The notes under the pieces are model-generated. The model ran no database searches and was not told the origin of the DNA. It saw only the letters and a program-made list of their open reading frames with translations. Position numbers and translations under genes: made by a program. A DNA stretch of 64,000 nucleotides. Origin: Fimbriosthenelais zetlandica (lineage: Eukaryota). The first letter of the stretch is position 1, and each line of letters opens with the position of its first letter. The stretch lies in NCBI GenBank assembly GCA_977030845.1, contig OZ365109.1, positions 52,080,001 to 52,144,000 on the forward strand. Direction: 5' to 3'. Positions 51,186 through 64,000 of the stretch are shown here, piece after piece.

Positions 51186-52482
51186 TTATTCGGTTTTCTT
51201 ATCGACACCAATTTTGCGTAAGAATGTGTCGAGGGTGGTCACATACTCAGCTGGGTTTTGTCGGAGGTGGCCGGCATGAGGAGAGGACAGCCAGCTTTTA
51301 CCCATGATTTCAGCTGTACCACTATTAGTCCAGTTGTCTATCAAATCTCTGATGGCTACTGGATCACTCATAGGGTCATCTTCTGAGTACAGAAAGAGCG
51401 AGCTACACTTCATGGGATTCTCCATGAACGTCGCCACAGCAAGATTGTAAAATTCCACCGTGTGTCTCCTTGTCATTCTCAGGTACACCTTGACTGAGGC
51501 CATGATCACAGACTGAAAGAAGGATCGACCAGACAGAGTGGTTGCTATGCCAACTCCCATCTTCTCCAGCCCTCCAATAACGATACTGTCAAAAACTTGA
51601 CCTTGAATTCTGGATTTCAGTTTCTCGTGTAGTTTTGGTCTTTTTTGGAGTTCCATCAAAAGGACAGTGTAAATATAAGCGCCTATAGACATGCCATGTA
51701 TGATGATTGGTCGTTTCATATGGCTTTCATTGTGAGTGAGGTACGTTATGATTTCTTGGGCCATGGCTATAGCCTGCGGGGGCCACATAAAATGTTTCAT
51801 CTTGCCTTGGACAGTCAGGACATCCCAACCTTTTTGATGATAGATATCGCAGTATCTATTCACGGGTTTGGTCGGTGCCATGACCCATGGGAAGAAGAGA
51901 ACCAGAGGTTTGGGGACACCACTTCCTTCTCCATCTTCCCCTTCAATAGTATTAGGTTCCACTTCTCTCAGGCAGAGGTGAGGTGTTATGCTGGTCTTTC
52001 GGACTGGTCTCAGTTCATTGGCATTTAATATTCCATCTTCTTTCTCACTGTTGGAATTGCATAGGTAGACCTGTGTAGAAATAAATATATATTCTTCCGA
52101 TTAGATCAAAAGTAAAATTTCAAGTTAACCAAAGGGATGTAATATCTAGCTGATAAAACAGGCCTTTACAGGGCGTTCTTTTCATTTGGTAGGAAATTAT
52201 TATAGCCTAGAGTCTAGACGTATCCGCCCCAAAAATAGCCATTGTGCTATTGTAAAGGCACTCCTTCCACACAATCTGGGCATCCTCTGTCTAACAAGGT
52301 ACAGCTGTCCAGGACGTTTCGAATGCCATCTTTTTTCGTCTTCTCCCCTCCCCACCCATACTTTCTCTCAATCTCACCCTGTACATTTCCTTAGGGAGTC
52401 TCATCTGCCACAATCAACGACCCTTTATCCTTGGACACAACACCCAATGCCACAAAATTATTTTCACTATACAACTCACCAT
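51186..52482 (-). CDS. TMEM53/DUF829-family alpha/beta-hydrolase-like protein (about 295 aa)
   Basis: The main exon 52070-51186 is open from the acceptor ttctacacag (phase 0) to TAA. Motifs PLVLFFPW, IHGMSIG, FDS, LFLYSEDDPM and SPHAGHLRQNPAEY are typical of DUF829/TMEM53. The likely ATG is the last codon of a 15-nt exon at 52494-52480 (ttttacag|TTTGAACTTATAATG|GTGAGT). The 5' end is less certain than the body. Confidence 0.8.
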
Positions 52483-53978: not shown

Positions 53979-56900
53979 TACGCCATGTGGAGAAATAACG
54001 AACTAACAACGAACGAAATTTCCCGCCCCTGCTACATCAAATGTAGGCCTACACGTATCCCTACCAAACGTTTAGACAGTTTTCCATTCATAGGTCTATG
54101 GCATAAACGGTCTAAACTTTTGGTAGGGATGTGTATATATAGGCAACATTTACTAGGAACGTAGGCATATAGGCCTATTTTCTTGACTTTCTTTTCGGTA
54201 GTGATAAAGGCTACTCACACAAAGACGGTATATAATCCAGACGAAAGTAATCATGATTTTCCCAATAATACGGAAGAATTTTACAACCACACTTCCTGCA
54301 GATACAGCATCATTTCCCGAAACAGTCTGATCTGGAATCAAAGAGGGACAATAGGTTTAATAACATTCCGGAGTCCGGACATCATAATAGCCTACATTGC
54401 AATAGACCTACTCAGGCCTGTAAGCCTATAGGCTCACGCAGTGTATCATTGCAAAGTTTAAAATTGGCGTATATTAGGCCTATGTTTAGCCCTATTAGGC
54501 ATAATAATTTTGCATTGCCTGGTAGGCTATTGTCAATTGCCTTTATGGAAATAATATGGCCTAATAGATCTCCTACCAACGTTGTGTAGTATATCTATGA
54601 GGCCCACAGTATGAGAATTAGACTAGAAATTCGACCTATCCAAGAAAAAAAGTCACCAAAACTATAAAACACAAAATTTCATCTCATCACAGAAATACAT
54701 TTTGTTTCGGACAAGTACAAAAATATATAGGGTAACAATATTCCTATAAATCAATAATAATAATTATTATTAATTAGGCCTACCATTATTTGAATCCATT
54801 TCTCCGGTTATTTTCTGTCGTACTGAACAGCTTTTCTTCATCCCGAAATTGCTTTCGGTCTATGATTATTCACTATCCCCGGCGTTGTCCTGACAAAGCT
54901 ATAGTCAGGACATCTCTCTCGCCACTGAAACTGCCAGTGCTGCTACTGCTGTTGTTGGTTCAATGGCTGCTGCGTCTGCTGCTGCTGCATTTCCTGCATC
55001 TCAGCCAAAATCCAAAGCCAGACATGTTTGTGCCAGATCATTCCTTCCTATTCCAGACCATTATGCATGTATATCGGTCCTATATTTCTCTGTGTGTCTA
55101 TACATGACGTGTTGCCCAGAAATGGATGGTCATTATCTTAATCACTCTGCAAATATATCCCCGAGTTTTGCACCCCATGGCATGTAATATTATGTTGGTA
55201 TGCCAATGTTGGTGCATATTATGGCTCGCTCATTCACTACTCCTGCTTTTCTCTAGTGTCGTCGTGTCCCACCCTCCTTTCATAAAACCCTGGTCTAAAT
55301 CATAGTCATAATAGTAAAATGTGGGTAAGCCTAACTAAAGCGATTGTACCTGGAGTAGGTAGGCTCGTCTTATAAGTATTCCATAGTACCGAGTACTTGT
55401 AAACCAGTCCTGGTTTTTGTTGAAGATGAGGTTTTCTGCTCGAGGGACAGTGAGCTACTCTGGATGGTTGCTATTACTCATTCTGTACTACTACCCTCCT
55501 CCTTACAAAACATTCGATAGGGCGCGCTAGGAGATCTCTGCTGACTTTCCCACATTTCGGCCTATATATATGGGCCGTGAGAAATCCGTTTAACCCTACT
55601 GGGAGTCTAGTCCTACATAATTATGCAGTTTTAAATAATGTTCAGATTTTACAATAAAATGTAGGCCTATTCATTAATTTGTTAATCTATTTGTCTACTC
55701 TCAACTACTACTTACACAGTCATGTGCTATATATTACCTCCACCACACTTCTGACTTTCTCCACAATGCACCTTTCACACTATAGGCCTACCTATATGGA
55801 ATGGAAATATATAGGCCTAAAATAATAACATCGTAAGAATGACCTTAGAACCATAACCGTTCACCCCTAGCCTCGATCTCTGGTCAAGCCGTACTGAGAG
55901 ATGCCGGTAGGCAGGTGCTGCCACCTACATTGGCAACAATGTATCCTCTCAAGTCTCATTGAGTAAAAAATGACGAAACCGTACCGTAATGCTTTTATTT
56001 ATATGTTCCCTCAATAACAAATTAATTCTTTTCGTACCGAGATCGAATGGCTTGCAGGAAGTGTAGGTCGAGGGTCGGGACCAGTAGCGGTCACATTGGA
56101 GTTCCCAATATTAATCATGAATGTGTTTTTTTAATTGTTCATACATTTATTCGATCTCATTTATGACTGTTTTTTCTGAATCGATTCCATATTCAATCTA
56201 TTCCATCATAATTATCTCTGCACATTTATAATTATACGAAGGTCAGAAATAGACGCAATGAATAGTTATGAACCACTGAAATGAATTATGTTAGTCAATC
56301 ATGTTATTTTAAGACACTGGTATGATGGAAACCTTTATTTACATAAGGCCAAACAGAATAGGGAAAGGTGTTTCAGTTTAACCCCACCCCCTTTACCTAG
56401 AAAATCCTAACTCCAACCTAGTTTTAGCTGGAATGAACCTGAACCACGCCTTTAATTGATTTCGCCTAATTGTACAGTTGTAGGCCTATATATTGTGATA
56501 CTTGTGATAGCTTAATTAGGACACGGGCGTGAGTGAGGTCATAAAGGAAGGATTCCGACTAATGGACAAGTGATGAGCAAGTTGACATTAATTAGAGAAA
56601 TAACAGATATTTATGACTGAGCAATTAATATATGTGCATGTATTATAGTGGTCCATTCAACTAGGAAACTTTAATCCTTCGAGGAACTTAATCCAGATAG
56701 GACCTATATATTGGTTGGATGACCGAAATGTAACAAAAATACGGAAGTAAAATGCCGCCACTGCCCCCAACGTGTGTAAAGTAATCGGACGTGAGGAAAA
56801 GTTATATTTGGGCACATTATATTTGATTACATATGATTAAATGTATTTATACTTATATTTTATGACATTGCCTTGGGGTTTATTTCTTGTAGAGGAATGA

Positions 56901-57454
56901 TTTGTATAGTTAAATGGGATTCTATTCGAGGTAGGATAATCATTATTGCTCACATGGGTCATGGGTTTCTCTCTTCGAAAATACCATGGAGATCTGAATG
57001 GTTATTGAACTATATTGTCGGCAATGAAAATAGAAGTACAGGGTCGGATTCCGGGGTTGAGTTCTGTGGTTTGTAACCCTCCTTAATTAGTTCTAAATCT
57101 TCAAAAAGTGGCTGTGCATTGTAATTTATTCCTTTACGCTAATATTCGTCTAAAACTGACTAGCTTATATTACATGAATACACATGTGTGTAAATAAAAA
57201 TATATTAATAAACAATTAATTAATAAATAATGATAACTTTATCCAATGTAATGGCTAAAGCCTGCAAAGTTAAATCACCAAGGCCATAACGCTTGTCCTT
57301 TCCCCTAACATGATGTCCATTTGTCTGTACCTCGACCTCTACTACATCTCAGTTTTCATATTACCATCAATGGTCAAATACTGACCACAACTGAAGATTT
57401 ATAAGAAAGCATACCTTGATCTTTTGATTTACGTTTCTTTCTCTCAGGCTACAG

Positions 57455-60400
57455 ATGTCAACCAAAATGATAACTAGAATACTTCTTACTGCAATTTGTA
57501 AGTATGATGATGATTTGTATATAATTCAATTGCAATGTTACATATATAGCTGTATAGGTGTTCCAAGAAAAGGGTAGAAAACTAGCCCTGACTCAGAGGG
57601 ACCCTGGTTCGATTTCCGGTATATGTATAATGCATTAACGCATTTCCGCATTACACGGTGTTTTTTATACAATATTTTCTGATAATTATTCTCGAATTAC
57701 TTGTAGGCGGATGTATAAATTATTTGATACGACGTAACGAAGTCTTTTGTTATTGTGTCTTGATAGCTTTTGATTGTACATTAATGTTTTCTTAAGGACA
57801 TTTATCAAATAATACCATTTCCACTGTTTCGGGGTTTTACAGGCTGTCCTGAACATGTCATGCCTAGGCCCTATATACAATTTTATATATTATATTGACA
57901 TATTTCTTGTTTACATAATGCTCTAATTACAGTTTAGGACTCGTCTGATTGAAAGATAAAATTCTAGTTAAAATTGCACATCAATTGTAAATAAAATAAA
58001 AATATAATAATTAAATAATTTTACAACTGAATACAAATGAACAGACCTACATTGCATGAATCTTAGAAGGAAAGGTGAATGTGCAGATCATTGTATAGCC
58101 TAGGTGTCTGTGAAATAGACAACTCTCACTCAGACGTATTGTTTTTATGATCATCAAATCATGACCATAGGCTATAAATTATACAAGACCTTAATTGAGT
58201 CTGCAAATGTATTACTCTAAAGAATTATATCGCCAATATGTACCGTTCACATTCTTTTGATCATCGCATTTGTGAATTGTTATTGTAATATCGATGTAAT
58301 ATCGATGTGACCTCATTTGCATAATATATAGAAAGAGTATTTAAATCGTTTTTGATTAATTATCAAAAATATTTCCTCTTGTCACATACTGAGAATCAAC
58401 TGGATGATTACTAGAATATTAGATGTGCAATGACTGGAGCAAATTAATATTGAAAAATATCTACATCTAATATTATTACGGTACCGTTTGAAAAGTAAAA
58501 TAGATCTTTTCCTGATTATAATGTATAGTATCATCATAAATAAAGTATCATAAATAAGTTTTATTATAAATTTGATATTTGATCCTTTTTCTATTAATAC
58601 ATGTAAGTTGTAACACGTATAATATATCAATTTGGTTCATGAAAGCGATTGACCGCAGGCAATATATAGACTACTTTACGGGTTTACCAATAACAATGTA
58701 AAGCACTAAAAGCTGCAGATGCACAGAGCCCAAGATACGGTTAATGGCAATATCATGTCAGCCATGACGTTTTAATTTATATACGGATACAGAGATGCTT
58801 TCAAGCTTTCATGCCTATATACATTATATTGCTCCCTGGAGCATAAAGGAACATGGATAAATGTATAGGTAAAACATGAACAGCTTAAAAAATAGAGCAA
58901 GGTCCCTATAGCTCATTGCGATCGTATCTGATCCTTCTTAATCGCGGCACTTCCTGCAAACCTGTATTATTTTTTTAACATGTCAATTCGATGTTTTCTT
59001 TACTTCTTATTTCCTTCTTATTTCTTCCAGTTATAATCCAAATATATATATCAGAGATGAAAAGTGTTCACAGAAACGAGAGCCAGGCATTATGGCCATC
59101 TGCCAAACATCAAAAGAACTTGAGAAATAAACTTCCAATATCAGCTTCAACAGAGGTAAAAACTACGAGTTACCGTAAACCAGAGGGAAAGGATTTTGGT
59201 TTTGGGAATGGGTTTGGGAATGGATTCGGGCACGGGCATGGACACGGCCATGGTCATGGACATAGCCAAGGATACCACTTCAATGCCAATGGTAATTTTC
59301 AATATTTAGATTCCTTATGCCATAGACCTTAAGTAGAATGAATTCAAGATGAATTTATTATAATAGACTTAAGAGATGACATTTTCTTTCTTTCTGTTAA
59401 GGATGTAGGAAGCCTGGTCAGATAGTGTGTGATGTTGATGCAGCCTCTGATTTGGACCGTCTTTGTCAGTATGCGGTTTGTGTATATTCATCTGAGACTC
59501 CTAACCTTTGGTGGCAGGCTGATTTTGAGGTAGTTCGTATGGTGTGTCCAGACGATACAGGGGTGCCATCTGATTTTGCTGCCCTTTGCGAGAGTGGCGT
59601 GAACCTATACGGAATTATACAGGCTATCCATCAGAGTCGACATTCAGGGTATGGAGGAGGACATGGAGGTGGTCATAACAGAAAACATTCCAAGTACAAT
59701 TATATGGATGAAACTCCATGTGTTGTGTCCAGAACGGCCTGTGAGTGATTATAATTACACTATTTCCCACCCTAGAATCAGAGAGATATCCTAGTTATAA
59801 ATTATTCAAAAAATAATTTACTAATTAATTTCCATATTAAAAACCATAGACGATCGCTCCATAATCGGGTAGAAATCGGGGAAATGCATTGTAACCATCA
59901 CAATTCGTGTTTCGGGTATATTCTTCTATATATGGTGCATGGCTTTTACCTAATTTTCTACATAATAAATACCTTTGACGAATACAAATTGGAGTTTAGT
60001 ATGTTAAAGTAATATCTATTTTATGAACACAAATATATTTTAAAAAAATTAAAAAGGAATGAAAGAAATATTCAAAGAGTTCACATGATTGTAGGTGATG
60101 CTGATCTGGATGACAATGATGATGCCCCAGCTGTAGTCCCTGTACCAGATCCAACACAAGGTCCACCCGAATCTGTCCCGGAGACACCTACACCTGCACA
60201 AGTTCCACCACAGGCCCTTCCAACGGAGACTTTACCTCCAGTCGGTCGAACTCTAAGCAATGTCAACCCATTCACTCGGCCCCCTGCCGTCACCCATTTT
60301 CGGACAACAGCTTCTCCAATACAGCCAATCCCTGACTCGGGTAAGAATTCCTTATAAAAATCGTTTGATACGTTTAGTTAGGTATAGAATTCGTTTAGTT

Positions 60401-63400
60401 ACTTCTAGAAAAAGCACCCCATGTATATATAGCCTAATATTGTTCGTAGTACAATGTAATGGTTGTACCTGGGTAAAAATTGACCCAGCGACACGGCCCT
60501 AAATAAAGGGTGACATTCTGACACAGACTGTTTAACGTGTCACACACAGAGCTGACAAAAACTGACACACGTGACACATGAGACATTTTTATCGTGTGAT
60601 ATTCTGACTCAGGCATAAAAAAGGGAACCCATGTACACCCCTAATGTATAACTATCAGTAATAAATGCATCGCTAACATTTGTTAGGAGGGAAAGAGAAG
60701 AATCGAGCGGGGTGGGGGGAGTGTATACTATATTATATTAGGCTACGTAAATTTAACCTCTGAATTATTAGCAATATATAAGCCAGTTATAAATATTTTT
60801 AGGATGTCCTGGACCATTTCTAAAGTTCCCTGGTTACCATAGTGAGGGTGGCGTGCTTTCTCCTTCCATTGATACAGAGGAATCATGTAAAGCTTTCTGC
60901 CTCGGTCATAGTCATTGTAGGTGAGTGTTTTAACTTTATAATCATCATTCATATATATTATAGGGAAAAGGAAACTTTTCTAACTATATGAAGTGTACAT
61001 AATTTAAGTTGAAGCAGCCTTATATATATACATGTTACATGTGGTAAGCTCATTTAGAATGACTGGAATTAAGAACATTTTCAGGGCGATCGACTTCTCG
61101 GGTCAAAACTGTTATTATTTTGACGAATCTCGGCAAACGAAAATTGAAAAGGACGTGTGGACAAATCACCTAATGATAACGACTTGCCATGGTGATGCAG
61201 GTAACAACCAATTTCCAATGAAGGAACTTTTTTCTAATCTAAGGTTGGTCTATGTTAATAGTGCATTCTAATCTCAGTTCAATCTCTGCTTTAAGGCGCT
61301 GATAAATGGTTTGATTCATGTTCACCTGGATACCATGTGAATGGGGCTTCTACCTATAAGGAACATATACCTTCAATCACCACATGCCAACAAATGTGCA
61401 ACCACGATGATGAATGTTATGTAAGTTTAACAGTCTGATATTCTGAATCTGCTGAAAGTGAAAAGGGCAGTGATCCAACCCACCAAGCGGTTCCTATACA
61501 AATTAAAACTTATATATTTTCTTTACAGGGAATTGATTACGATTTTCAAGAACATGTTTGTTGGCTACATAAGAGTTACTCAGTATGTGGGACCTACATA
61601 CCCTCTGAGAAAAGCACTCATTGCAGAAAAAAAGATTGTGGTAAGTTTAGGCCTATAGGCCCAAAATTAGTACATATTTGTAATATGTTTTTATTTATAT
61701 AACCTAATGTGACACCTACAGTCTGTTCACTCTAAGTTGATCCGAAACCACAGTACATATGTATGGTAGTTTCAACTTAGAGTGAACAGACTGTAGTGTT
61801 CTACAGTCACTAGACAGTGAATTAGTCCGATTTGCCAAACAGGCAGTGTATCCTATGAGAGTGGTGCATATTCAAACACTTGCCGAATTGTAACCATTAT
61901 CAATAGAGGTACCAAAATTATGATGACCGTTTATAATTGAATAAAGTCCATATATTCAAAGTTTCAATTATATTCACTGTCGGAATGGGATATAATCGAG
62001 CAATAATTAACAACTTCAGATTGATTCTTCAGTAGTGAAGTGGGTTTCAGTCCATGGTAACCAATATCACTCAGGGGGGTCACATGACCATCAGGTTGGG
62101 TTTGCTAGTTTACCAACAGTATAAGGGCACTGACAATTGACAGGATAAAGAAAGCTAAATAGTATTGAGGAAACCATCAGGACATGAAGCAGGTCACAGC
62201 CTCATCATGTTATTTGGCTATTTAGGAGTTTTCTGTTACGGTACCAAATAATGATATTTATGTGCAATATATGTAATTATAAGGTTGCATTCCGAGAATG
62301 AAAAGCTATAGTTTAATTATTTAAACACATTTTGCAGTTAGTAATATAGCTTTCAGACCCTATTTAGACACTTTTGATTATTTACATTTAAAACCCCATC
62401 CTATGACTGGGCACCGACCTGCCTTCAAGTCGTGTGATCTTCCTTAATCCCCCTGTTATCTCTTTTTCTGACAATTGTCAGTGCCCTTATAGTGTTGATA
62501 AACAAGCAAAACAAACCTGATGGTCATTTGACCCCCCTGAGTGATATGGCTGACCTCTGACTGAAAGCCACTTCACTACTGAAGAATCAATCTGAGGTTG
62601 TTAATTAGTGCTCGATTATATCCCATTGCTATGGCGAATATAATTGAAACTTAGAATATAAGGACTTAATATGCTTATGAATAACCACCATAATTTTGGT
62701 ACCTCTATTGTAAATGGTTACAATTCGGCAAGTGTTTGAAAATGCACCACTCTCATAGGATACACTGCCTGTTTGGCAAATCGGACTAATTCACTGTCTA
62801 GTGACTGTACATAAGGGGTCATTGTCTTTATGCCTGGGGAGACGTCAAATTTTCACATACTACTATTTTCCTCTAGAATGATAATGTACATGTACACGAG
62901 TGGCCAGTATGAATTCTGATGAAGTCGCTATAATACCTCAATAATATTTTAATGTATAACTTTGATCCAGGGTTGACAAAGCCCGGTCATCCACGTGGCT
63001 ATTCAGTGGTTAGTGTTGGGTATCAACAGAAAGGTGGAGTTTTCCTCACTGGTACACGGTCCAGGTCCGTCTGTATACAAACATGTGATGCCAACCCAAA
63101 CTGTGGAGTAAGTCTATCATTTTATGAAGGAGTATTGGGGTGCGACAGTATGGAAATGTCGTTTAGGGGAAAAAGCTCTTGACCTTTGGCTATCCATCCG
63201 CATCACTTCAAAAGCTGCTCATCAATTAATGGGTTTCCCTCAGATCTGTAAGGGGTAGAAAACACCAGTACAAAATTAAATGCAGTACATATAATGTAGG
63301 GTTTTAAAAATTAAAAAACTTAACAATTATCCTGTTATTCAGCTATTTAGTGAATAATTTGCTACATTTTGGTTCAGAAGTGATTAGATCTATGTTTTCA

Positions 63401-63576
63401 TGAAAACCTATAGGTCATCGAAAGAAAAAATGTTATATAAACTTCATTTTCAGGCTGTAGATTACAAAGTTGATGATGGAACTTGCTGGCACATCCCTGA
63501 GAAATACGCTTGTGGAGCTTTCAAACGAGTAGACACCATTACCAATTACAGAAAGGCATCCACACATTGTATTTAG
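57455..63576 (+). CDS. Secreted modular protein: signal peptide, Gly/His-rich tract, CBM14 (peritrophin-A)-like domain, Pro/Thr linker, 3 PAN/apple domains (539 aa)
   Basis: Exons 57455-57497, 59031-59291, 59402-59740, 60095-60340, 60803-60920, 61085-61200, 61296-61420, 61529-61640, 62971-63107, 63454-63576. Total 1620 nt, all GT-AG, frame-consistent. N-terminus MSTKMITRILLTAIFIIQIYISE. CBM14-like motif CQYAVC...RMVCPDDTGVP. Three repeats of the form C-x3-C-x5-C-x-[AG]-[IV]-D-[FY]...C-[WY]. Confidence 0.85.
57555..57620 (+). pseudogene. Degenerate tRNA-derived sequence (SINE head or tRNA pseudogene)
   Basis: B-box-like GGTTCGATTTCC at 57606-57617 with an upstream GGTAG A-box-like remnant. 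The acceptor stem does not pair. Confidence 0.3.
61717..61795. mobile_element. Hairpin MITE, copy 2 (same family as 47227-47310)
   Basis: Left arm identical to copy 1. The right arm has a 5-nt deletion and one substitution. Flanked by TA on both sides. Confidence 0.85.
61802..62809. mobile_element. About 1.0-kb non-autonomous DNA transposon with about 340-bp terminal inverted repeats (TA TSD, CAGT ends)
   Basis: TA-CAGTCACTAGACAGTGAATTAGTCCGATTTGCCAAACAGGCAGTGTATCCTATGAGAGTGGTGC... is matched by its reverse complement ending ...GTCTAGTGACTG-TA. The arms (about 61804-62150 and about 62455-62807) remain alignable by eye with scattered mismatches. No transposase ORF inside. Confidence 0.9.
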
Positions 63577-64000
63577 TTGAGATTCAAATATTACATAATT
63601 ATATCAAAATATGGTCGTCAGGATTACTATAGCGGGCCTGAGGTTCTATAATCTTATTTTTTAGTATACATTTACCTTATTAATTATGTTTGGTTGAATA
63701 AATTTATTGTATAATTTATTGATATGTTTCCTCATATAGATCTATAGCCTACAATGTCATGTATATGCAACGGGCTTTCACTAAAATTTAATGAGTCCAA
63801 AGTGGCAAAAATGGATTTTGAGTTAGTTGCAGATTCTTAGTTGGATAAGATTATGAGCGTTACATTGATATGTGTGTAGCACATGGAGATGTGGTCACGA
63901 CTAGGCGAGACAAAATATGAAAGTTGCTAAGGCCATCTGATCATCAACAGACCAAATACTAAAATAGGTAAGCATTATATATACCTTGTTTTTGTACACA

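Follow-up and report, generated by a model that had tools for sequence, protein, structure and literature searches.

A recently duplicated gene of Fimbriosthenelais zetlandica with a predicted secreted triple-PAN/apple and mucin-like architecture and an orphan cysteine-rich module

Which kind of extracellular protein is encoded by the ten-exon gene at positions 57455 to 63576 of a 64,000-nucleotide stretch of the Fimbriosthenelais zetlandica genome (GenBank assembly GCA_977030845.1, contig OZ365109.1, positions 52,080,001 to 52,144,000 of the forward strand; this whole stretch is called the window in the following)? An earlier note, made from the letters of the DNA, had proposed a chitin-anchored matrix protein hardened by metal or catechol cross-links, in which a signal peptide, a Gly/His tract, a chitin-binding CBM14-like module, a Pro/Thr-rich stalk and three PAN/apple domains are combined in one polypeptide. 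We find that the gene is one of a recent tandem pair confined to a single genomic locus and that its three PAN/apple domains are ordinary ones by profile comparison, while the supposed chitin-binding module appears to be an orphan domain. Taken together, the predicted architecture is that of a secreted PAN/apple-plus-mucin protein with an orphan N-terminal module, and it falls outside any named family that we found.

The gene model was approached by enumerating all GT/AG boundaries within 4 nucleotides on either side of the ten exons, and a single combination leaves the reading frame open. This sole solution is a coding sequence of ten exons and 539 amino acids on the forward strand (57455-63576), which ends with the stop codon TAG at 63574-63576 and reproduces the coordinates and the length given in the earlier note. 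It consists of the following parts:

57455-57497, forward strand: exon 1, which carries the start codon and encodes the first 14 residues of an N-terminus resembling a signal peptide; its donor GTAAGT is in phase 1
59031-59291, forward strand: exon 2, with the remainder of the hydrophobic leader, a basic segment (isoelectric point (pI) 10.5) and the Gly/Phe/His tract
59195-59263, forward strand: FGFGNGFGNGF(GH)6 low-complexity tract of 23 residues within exon 2, read from the sequence
59402-59740, forward strand: exon 3, phase 1-1, the orphan 8-Cys module of about 113 amino acids
60095-60340, forward strand: exon 4, phase 1-1, an acidic stretch followed by the Pro/Thr-rich stalk
60803-60920 and 61085-61200, forward strand: exons 5 and 6, PAN/apple domain 1 (60803..61200), with intron 5 between them
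61296-61420 and 61529-61640, forward strand: exons 7 and 8, PAN/apple domain 2 (61296..61640)
62971-63107 and 63454-63576 (including the stop), forward strand: exons 9 and 10, PAN/apple domain 3 (62971..63576)

The ATG of exon 1 is preceded by an in-frame stop codon with no earlier start codon between the two. All boundaries that separate modules (1/2, 2/3, 3/4, 4/5, 6/7 and 8/9) are in phase 1, and each PAN repeat is interrupted by one internal intron whose position is equal within one nucleotide. The GC content amounts to 45% in the exons compared to 33% in the introns. As, in addition, a paralogue keeps every exon and splice site and the PAN domains become complete only when two exons are joined, the model is more than a chance arrangement of open segments.

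This paralogue was found by searching the genome of the same animal with exon 3, which revealed one further copy 7.3 kb downstream:

L003:2864-7053 (G000:C1:52145864-52150053): tandem paralogue, starting 1.9 kb past the window end, with an open model of 522 amino acids

Searches with exons 2, 3 and 9 detected no third copy in the 447-Mb genome. In the paralogue, the ten exons are complete and collinear with those of the window copy, and the two proteins are 89% identical. At the nucleotide level, identity reaches 92-99% in the exons compared to 83-93% in the introns, and all 18 splice dinucleotides are kept. The lengths of exons 1 to 10 differ between the copies by 6, 27, 15, 0, 0, 0, 0, 0, 0 and 3 nucleotides, all of them multiples of three, as opposed to only 39 of the 143 indels in introns. 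Besides, the mature protein holds 28 Cys residues in each copy, and although the exon 3/4 junction has been rebuilt in the paralogue, the eighth Cys of the module is nonetheless kept. The duplicated unit also takes in about 680 bp of sequence before the ATG and about 100 bp behind the stop codon.

The divergence between the copies also carries the signature of coding sequence. With a synonymous divergence (dS) of 0.118, the ratio of nonsynonymous to synonymous divergence (dN/dS) is 0.46 overall, with values of 0.31 for the Cys module and 0.35 for the PAN region; synonymous changes are in significant excess (binomial p = 3e-4). In the Pro/Thr linker, the ratio is about 1.1 and thus near neutrality, as would be expected for a disordered linker. 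Nonsynonymous divergence (dN) lies between 0.065 and 0.10 in the N-terminal half and the linker versus 0.028 in the PAN region. The open frame, the splice sites, the indel pattern and the synonymous excess together therefore provide good evidence that both copies have been maintained as coding genes under purifying selection.

For the PAN/apple domains, Pfam was run on single exons and hence sees half domains; whole domains were judged by a local profile instead. Exon 7 alone matched PAN_1 with 15.9 bits (expectation value (E) 0.012, positions 7-37 of 76) and exon 9 alone matched PAN_4 with 15.9 bits (E 0.014). Both scores are below the respective cut-offs of 21.4 and 27, and both matches fall in the correct half of the model. 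The local profile was derived from 27 segments of this animal's genome that pass the curated cut-off of Pfam PAN_1, a genome scan with PF00024 having given at least 52 matches above that cut-off, and was searched against the spliced proteins. It recognised three domains in the window protein (residues 305-370, 385-453 and 470-534, 29-40 bits each) and likewise three in the paralogue, with matches that span profile positions 4-72 of 74. Cut out of the protein, domains 1, 2 and 3 scored 35.0, 46.4 and 42.1 bits over their full length, compared to maxima of 14.2, 17.7 and 18.8 bits for shuffled versions with fixed Cys positions. Reversed sequences gave about 0 bits, and 30 CBM14 domains reached at most 5.9 bits. 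Since every PAN match spans an intron, the junctions 5/6, 7/8 and 9/10 gain support from the same result.

The Cys patterns are in line with this assignment. The first domain has six Cys in the classic apple pattern (positions 1, 28, 32, 38, 48 and 73), the second has eight (6, 28, 32, 38, 50, 59, 71 and 76) and the third has six (29, 33, 39, 51, 60 and 79). All three share the four-Cys core (C-x3-C-x5-C ... C), and the N-terminal outer Cys is present in the first two and missing in the third; the disulfide pairing would follow from these positions. Profile searches against the PDB with alignments of half PAN domains returned non-significant rows only (factor XIa heavy chain, E 8.1; Kelch domain-containing entries, E 8.4). 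Based on these profile comparisons, the three PAN/apple domains claimed in the earlier note are confirmed as ordinary members of their family (PF00024 PAN_1 / PF14295 PAN_4).

The situation is different for the module encoded by exon 3, on which the earlier reading as a chitin anchor had pivoted. It combines an acidic core of six Cys with a Gly/His/Tyr loop, different in the two copies, and a C-terminal Cys pair. Its eighth Cys is encoded by the split codon of exons 3 and 4; the conserved Cys number eight, instead of the six counted before. The module resembles CBM14 / peritrophin-A (PF01607) in being small, disulfide-rich, extracellular and encoded by one phase 1-1 exon, and aromatic residues are conserved in it along with a loose C-x-Y-x2-C ... 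C-P ... F ... C motif. Unlike CBM14, which has six Cys in about 53 residues, it has eight in about 113, with the Gly/His/Tyr loop inserted. Counted from the second Cys, the spacings are 11, 4, 21, 13 and then 43 residues compared to 12, 5, 9, 12 and 7 in the consensus of the CBM14 domains of the same genome; three of these values (the first, second and fourth) are similar, but the third is double that of CBM14 and the sixth Cys is displaced.

Neither family profiles nor alignments bridge this distance. In Pfam, neither CBM_14 (curated cut-off 22.1 bits) nor any other family gave a match at E <= 10 for the module of the window copy, the paralogue or P0001, the homologous fragment described below, and a genome-wide scan with PF01607 yielded at least 97 CBM14 domains with neither copy of exon 3 among the matches listed. 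A CBM14 profile made from 30 domains of the same genome scored the module at 0.0 bits, with 267 of 494 Cys-fixed shuffles performing equally well or better, and hhalign assigned a probability of 5.4% over 8 columns around a common "CP". On the structural side, a Foldseek search of the PDB with a low-confidence AlphaFold2 model of the module (predicted local distance difference test (pLDDT) 44) found nothing at E <= 0.001. Chains of the CBM14 protein Avr4 appeared at ranks 1, 3, 5, 15 and 18 (E 2.6-6, template modelling (TM) score 0.2-0.35). These Avr4 rows were not kept by VIA-align, which ranked SH2 domains instead (Z about 4, noise). A relationship of the module to PAN was rejected (hhalign probability 0.1%). 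In consequence, membership of the CBM14 family is not supported by sequence comparison, and a remote relationship to the CBM14 fold seems to us rather unlikely.

Elsewhere in the genome, CBM14 repeats occur in large tandem arrays. The L062 region (G000:C11:19612294-19616559) contains an open frame of 1478 amino acids with at least 17 tandem CBM14 repeats, many of which score identically (36.2 bits), and C37 carries near 19.67 Mb an open frame of 925 amino acids with at least 12 such repeats; both are giant peritrophin or mucin-like chitin-binding genes.

If not CBM14, what is the module related to? Exhaustive comparison with 1.84 billion representative proteins by phmmer gave a single homologue, P0001 (193 amino acids, 35% identity, E 3.4e-8), which was also the only entry returned when 5.8 billion clusters were searched with a profile. 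No further usable homologues came from the JGI metagenomes, a PDB profile search, the ESM Atlas or a profile search of the same genome, nor did a feature search of the ESM Atlas with P0001 as the query give anything usable. P0001 shares 36 invariant columns with both copies, including seven Cys, and has its eighth Cys at an equal distance. It stems from a 725-bp contig (ENA analysis ERZ23498367) and its flanks are unrelated to the window protein: it starts with "FLPSG", as a translated acceptor would, and ends with "C-EYELS", which resembles a translated GTGAGT donor. Since these flanks read like a polypyrimidine/AG acceptor and a GTGAGT donor, P0001 is probably a single homologous phase 1-1 exon of another animal, translated into the flanking introns. 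Neither gene copy was found in a collection of 15 billion proteins, so there is no public annotation of them that we could find. Within the databases covered, the exon-3 module is an orphan domain with one distant relative, an environmental fragment.

The N-terminus of the protein consists of basic residues followed by a hydrophobic core of 13 residues. Beyond this core, the spliced protein lacks hydrophobic segments, and a C-terminal anchor is absent. This secretory-type N-terminus agrees with the signal peptide noted before and suggests that the protein is secreted without a membrane anchor. Exon 2 then encodes both the basic segment and the FGFGNGFGNGF(GH)6 tract, as described earlier; in Pfam, it gave matches below the cut-off only, which represent low-complexity noise. 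The codons of the tract are mixed (GGG/GGA/GGC/GGT, CAC/CAT), and thus it is not a pure DNA microsatellite. In the paralogue, exon 2 is 27 nucleotides shorter and the gap lies in the Gly/His tract, which leaves about 15 residues.

The earlier note had likened this tract to the His-rich proteins of polychaete jaws and squid beak. The Zn-binding jaw protein Nai11527 of nereids contains 16% His and 29% Gly, and a His-rich region of nereid jaw proteins is defined by at least 8 His per 20 residues (PMC13120676). His makes up 5.6% and Gly 9.7% of the mature window protein, whose richest stretch of 20 amino acids contains 7 His; the paralogue reaches 4.6% His and no more than 5 His per 20 residues. 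The resemblance to Nvjp-1 and Nai11527 comprises secretion, predicted for the window protein, and an alternation of Gly and His which is able in principle to coordinate Zn or Cu. In contrast to these Cys-poor and largely disordered proteins, with at least 16% His over hundreds of residues, the window protein has folded Cys-rich domains and one tract of 23 residues, and no sequence similarity to Gly/His-rich jaw proteins was found. The analogy is therefore weak: metal chelation by the Gly/His tract is chemically conceivable, but the protein is not a His-rich structural protein.

The stalk in exon 4 corresponds to its earlier description, with five Asp within ten residues followed by 19 Pro and 10 Thr in 71 amino acids. 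A close precedent for this part is LET-653 of C. elegans, which is attached to a luminal fibrillar matrix by its PAN domains and whose linker, rich in Pro, Thr and Ser, is O-glycosylated (PMC4970718). By analogy with this Pro/Thr/Ser (PTS) region, the stalk of the window protein is probably O-glycosylated too (PMC4970718). Both proteins would share a signal peptide, tandem PAN/apple domains and a Pro/Thr(/Ser)-rich stalk. The differences are i) the reversed order, with the PAN domains at the C-terminus, ii) the presence of three instead of two PAN domains and iii) the orphan module and the Gly/His tract, which have no counterpart in LET-653; a sequence orthology is not established. Furthermore, the functional core of LET-653 is its C-terminal ZP domain (PMC4970718). 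Apart from the noise in exon 2, Pfam detected neither ZP nor any other non-PAN family on any exon translation at E <= 10, and the window protein ends 5 residues past the third PAN match. The protein is accordingly not of the LET-653 type.

A second precedent comes from an annelid, as the PAN protein LAPP of the leech Haementeria officinalis binds collagens I, III and IV (PMC7191736). The two are alike by description: LAPP is secreted and its binding activity resides in PAN, and the window protein would likewise be a secreted PAN protein of annelid type. In contrast to the window protein, LAPP is small, carries one PAN domain and is made in the salivary gland of a blood feeder. A described protein with the architecture found here did not turn up in the literature searched, and the statement in the earlier note that it does not correspond to a named gene holds in this respect.

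How could such a protein work? The reading that we favour, with a confidence that is about evenly balanced, is a lineage-restricted secreted matrix or surface-coat glycoprotein which acts as a tether through its PAN domains. In this model, a modular protein of about 56 kDa before glycosylation, predicted to be free of a membrane anchor, is composed in order of the leader, the basic segment, the Gly/Phe/His tract, the orphan 8-Cys module, the mucin-like Pro/Thr stalk and the three PAN domains. The triple PAN would form a multivalent head whose partner is a protein or glycan of the extracellular matrix or surface coat, for example cuticle collagen, mucus or a tube lining. The stalk would serve as a glycosylated spacer, and the orphan module together with the short His tract may provide a second attachment or self-association site, so that the net effect would be to cross-link or tether matrix components. 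The role assigned to the PAN domains is derived from the precedents of LET-653 (PMC4970718) and LAPP (PMC7191736). Annelid cuticle is collagenous, which makes collagen a candidate if the animal is a worm. Of the earlier matrix-protein proposal, the matrix role stays plausible, if only on general grounds, and the chitin anchor on which it turned is not supported.

Several points weigh against this tether model. The likely signal cleavage site fits the -3/-1 rule poorly, and AlphaFold2 reached for the module a pLDDT of 38.4 from the single sequence and of 44.5 from an alignment of three rows. No RNA or DNA sequencing runs are listed for this stretch, and the junctions 1/2, 2/3, 3/4, 4/5, 6/7 and 8/9 are predicted from frame and conservation in the paralogue. 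PAN domains are functionally promiscuous, and a matrix tether is therefore one of several roles compatible with the architecture.

Among these other roles, a soluble humoral or glandular factor is unlikely, though worth keeping in view. Such a lectin-like protein could serve as an agglutinin, in pattern recognition or as a binder of collagen or glycans of other organisms, and the duplication together with the fast N-terminal half would then reflect an arms race. The binding of varied proteins and glycans by PAN/apple domains fits this idea, as does the secreted collagen binder LAPP (PMC7191736). The gene is also lineage-restricted and recently duplicated, and its N-terminal half and linker evolve faster than the PAN region; the elevated dN/dS is, however, restricted to the low-complexity linker, a region in which no arms race is needed to expect it. 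Some antimicrobials form a known class of Gly/His-rich peptides, but dibasic processing sites that could free such a peptide are absent as read from the sequence, and no immune-type domain accompanies the PAN domains.

We regard as improbable a matrix protein of chitinous hard parts (chaetae, jaw, tube or peritrophic membrane), in which a divergent CBM14-fold anchor and a PAN head are combined with metal or catechol hardening through Gly/His. The core motif of the module (C-x11-C-Q-Y-x2-C ... C-P-x3-G-V-x3-F-x3-C) is loosely CBM14-like and several aromatics (Tyr, Trp, Phe) are invariant between the module and P0001, but the sixth Cys of CBM14 is not at the expected distance, the next one following 43 residues on, and neither Pfam with three module sequences nor the genome-wide scan, the local profile or hhalign returned a CBM14 signal. 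The high ranks of Avr4 come from a low-confidence model, with non-significant E values, and were dropped by VIA-align. As for hardening, (GH)6 would be expected from its chemistry to chelate Zn, Cu or Ni, whereas the His content stays under the jaw criterion and the tract is shorter in the paralogue. Similarly doubtful is the proposal that the module belongs to an undescribed domain family of a narrow invertebrate lineage and forms, together with the (GH)n tract, a metal-sensitive anchor connecting the ligand of the triple PAN with a structural polymer (chitin, collagen or mucin). Finally, it is very improbable that the locus does not yield one functional transcript, either because exons 1-4 and the PAN exons 5-10 are separate or because it is silent or decaying. 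That no RNA run is listed for the stretch and that neither copy was found in the protein collection would be compatible with this. However, the PAN part has no start codon and leader of its own and hence needs exon 1 for secretion, the module boundaries are all in the compatible phase 1, and the duplication unit keeps the whole set collinear. Moreover, the copies have diverged by a dS of 0.12, and yet neither has lost the frame, the splice sites or any of the 28 Cys. We therefore return to the secreted PAN-based tether as the preferred reading.

The surroundings of the coding exons contain candidate control elements:

56773..57454, forward strand: upstream region common to the tandem paralogue (local alignment), probably the promoter
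57400-57405, forward strand: TATA-like TATAAG, 50 nucleotides before the ATG, a consensus match only
63697..63702, forward strand: AATAAA, candidate polyadenylation signal 121 nucleotides past the stop codon, a pattern match only

The local alignment of the upstream region with 580 bp upstream of the paralogue covers 523 columns at 89.5% identity.

Besides, the introns have been a target of insertions in both copies. Intron 8 harbours a 1-kb foldback element (window positions 61802-62809), whose two arms of 347 nucleotides are 89% complementary and 314 nucleotides apart. At least 40 scored copies of the arm, among 733 first-look candidates genome-wide, are 99-100% identical, and this near-identity points to a very young, high-copy transposon family of the foldback or miniature inverted-repeat transposable element (MITE) type. 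The element is missing in intron 8 of the paralogue, which measures 292 nucleotides compared to 1330 nucleotides here, and it was thus probably inserted after the duplication, with loss from the paralogue as the alternative. Intron 1 (57498-59030) is 1533 nucleotides long in the window copy versus 522 in the paralogue due to a copy-specific insertion, and intron 7 of the paralogue (L003:5526-6073) has a 416-nucleotide insertion absent from the window copy. The upstream neighbour at 51186-51962 on the opposite (reverse) strand is a single open frame of 258 amino acids with a full-length Pfam match to DUF829 (TMEM53-like, E 1.9e-28), unrelated to the PAN gene.

For the field of biomaterials, the message is mainly negative, as the combination of a chitin anchor with a His cross-linker is without backing from the sequence; the gene is therefore no priority in this context. 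Its interest lies in the domain architecture. In invertebrate genomes, domain combinations restricted to one lineage are common. The orphan domain is cleanly delimited here, with one phase 1-1 exon and eight conserved Cys, and could be expressed alone for structural work or ligand screening. Should the reading as an anchor from an undescribed family prove true, the protein would represent a matrix cross-linker of a new type. Provided that it is expressed, the gene pair would extend the class of extracellular PAN/apple-plus-mucin proteins of invertebrates by a new architecture.

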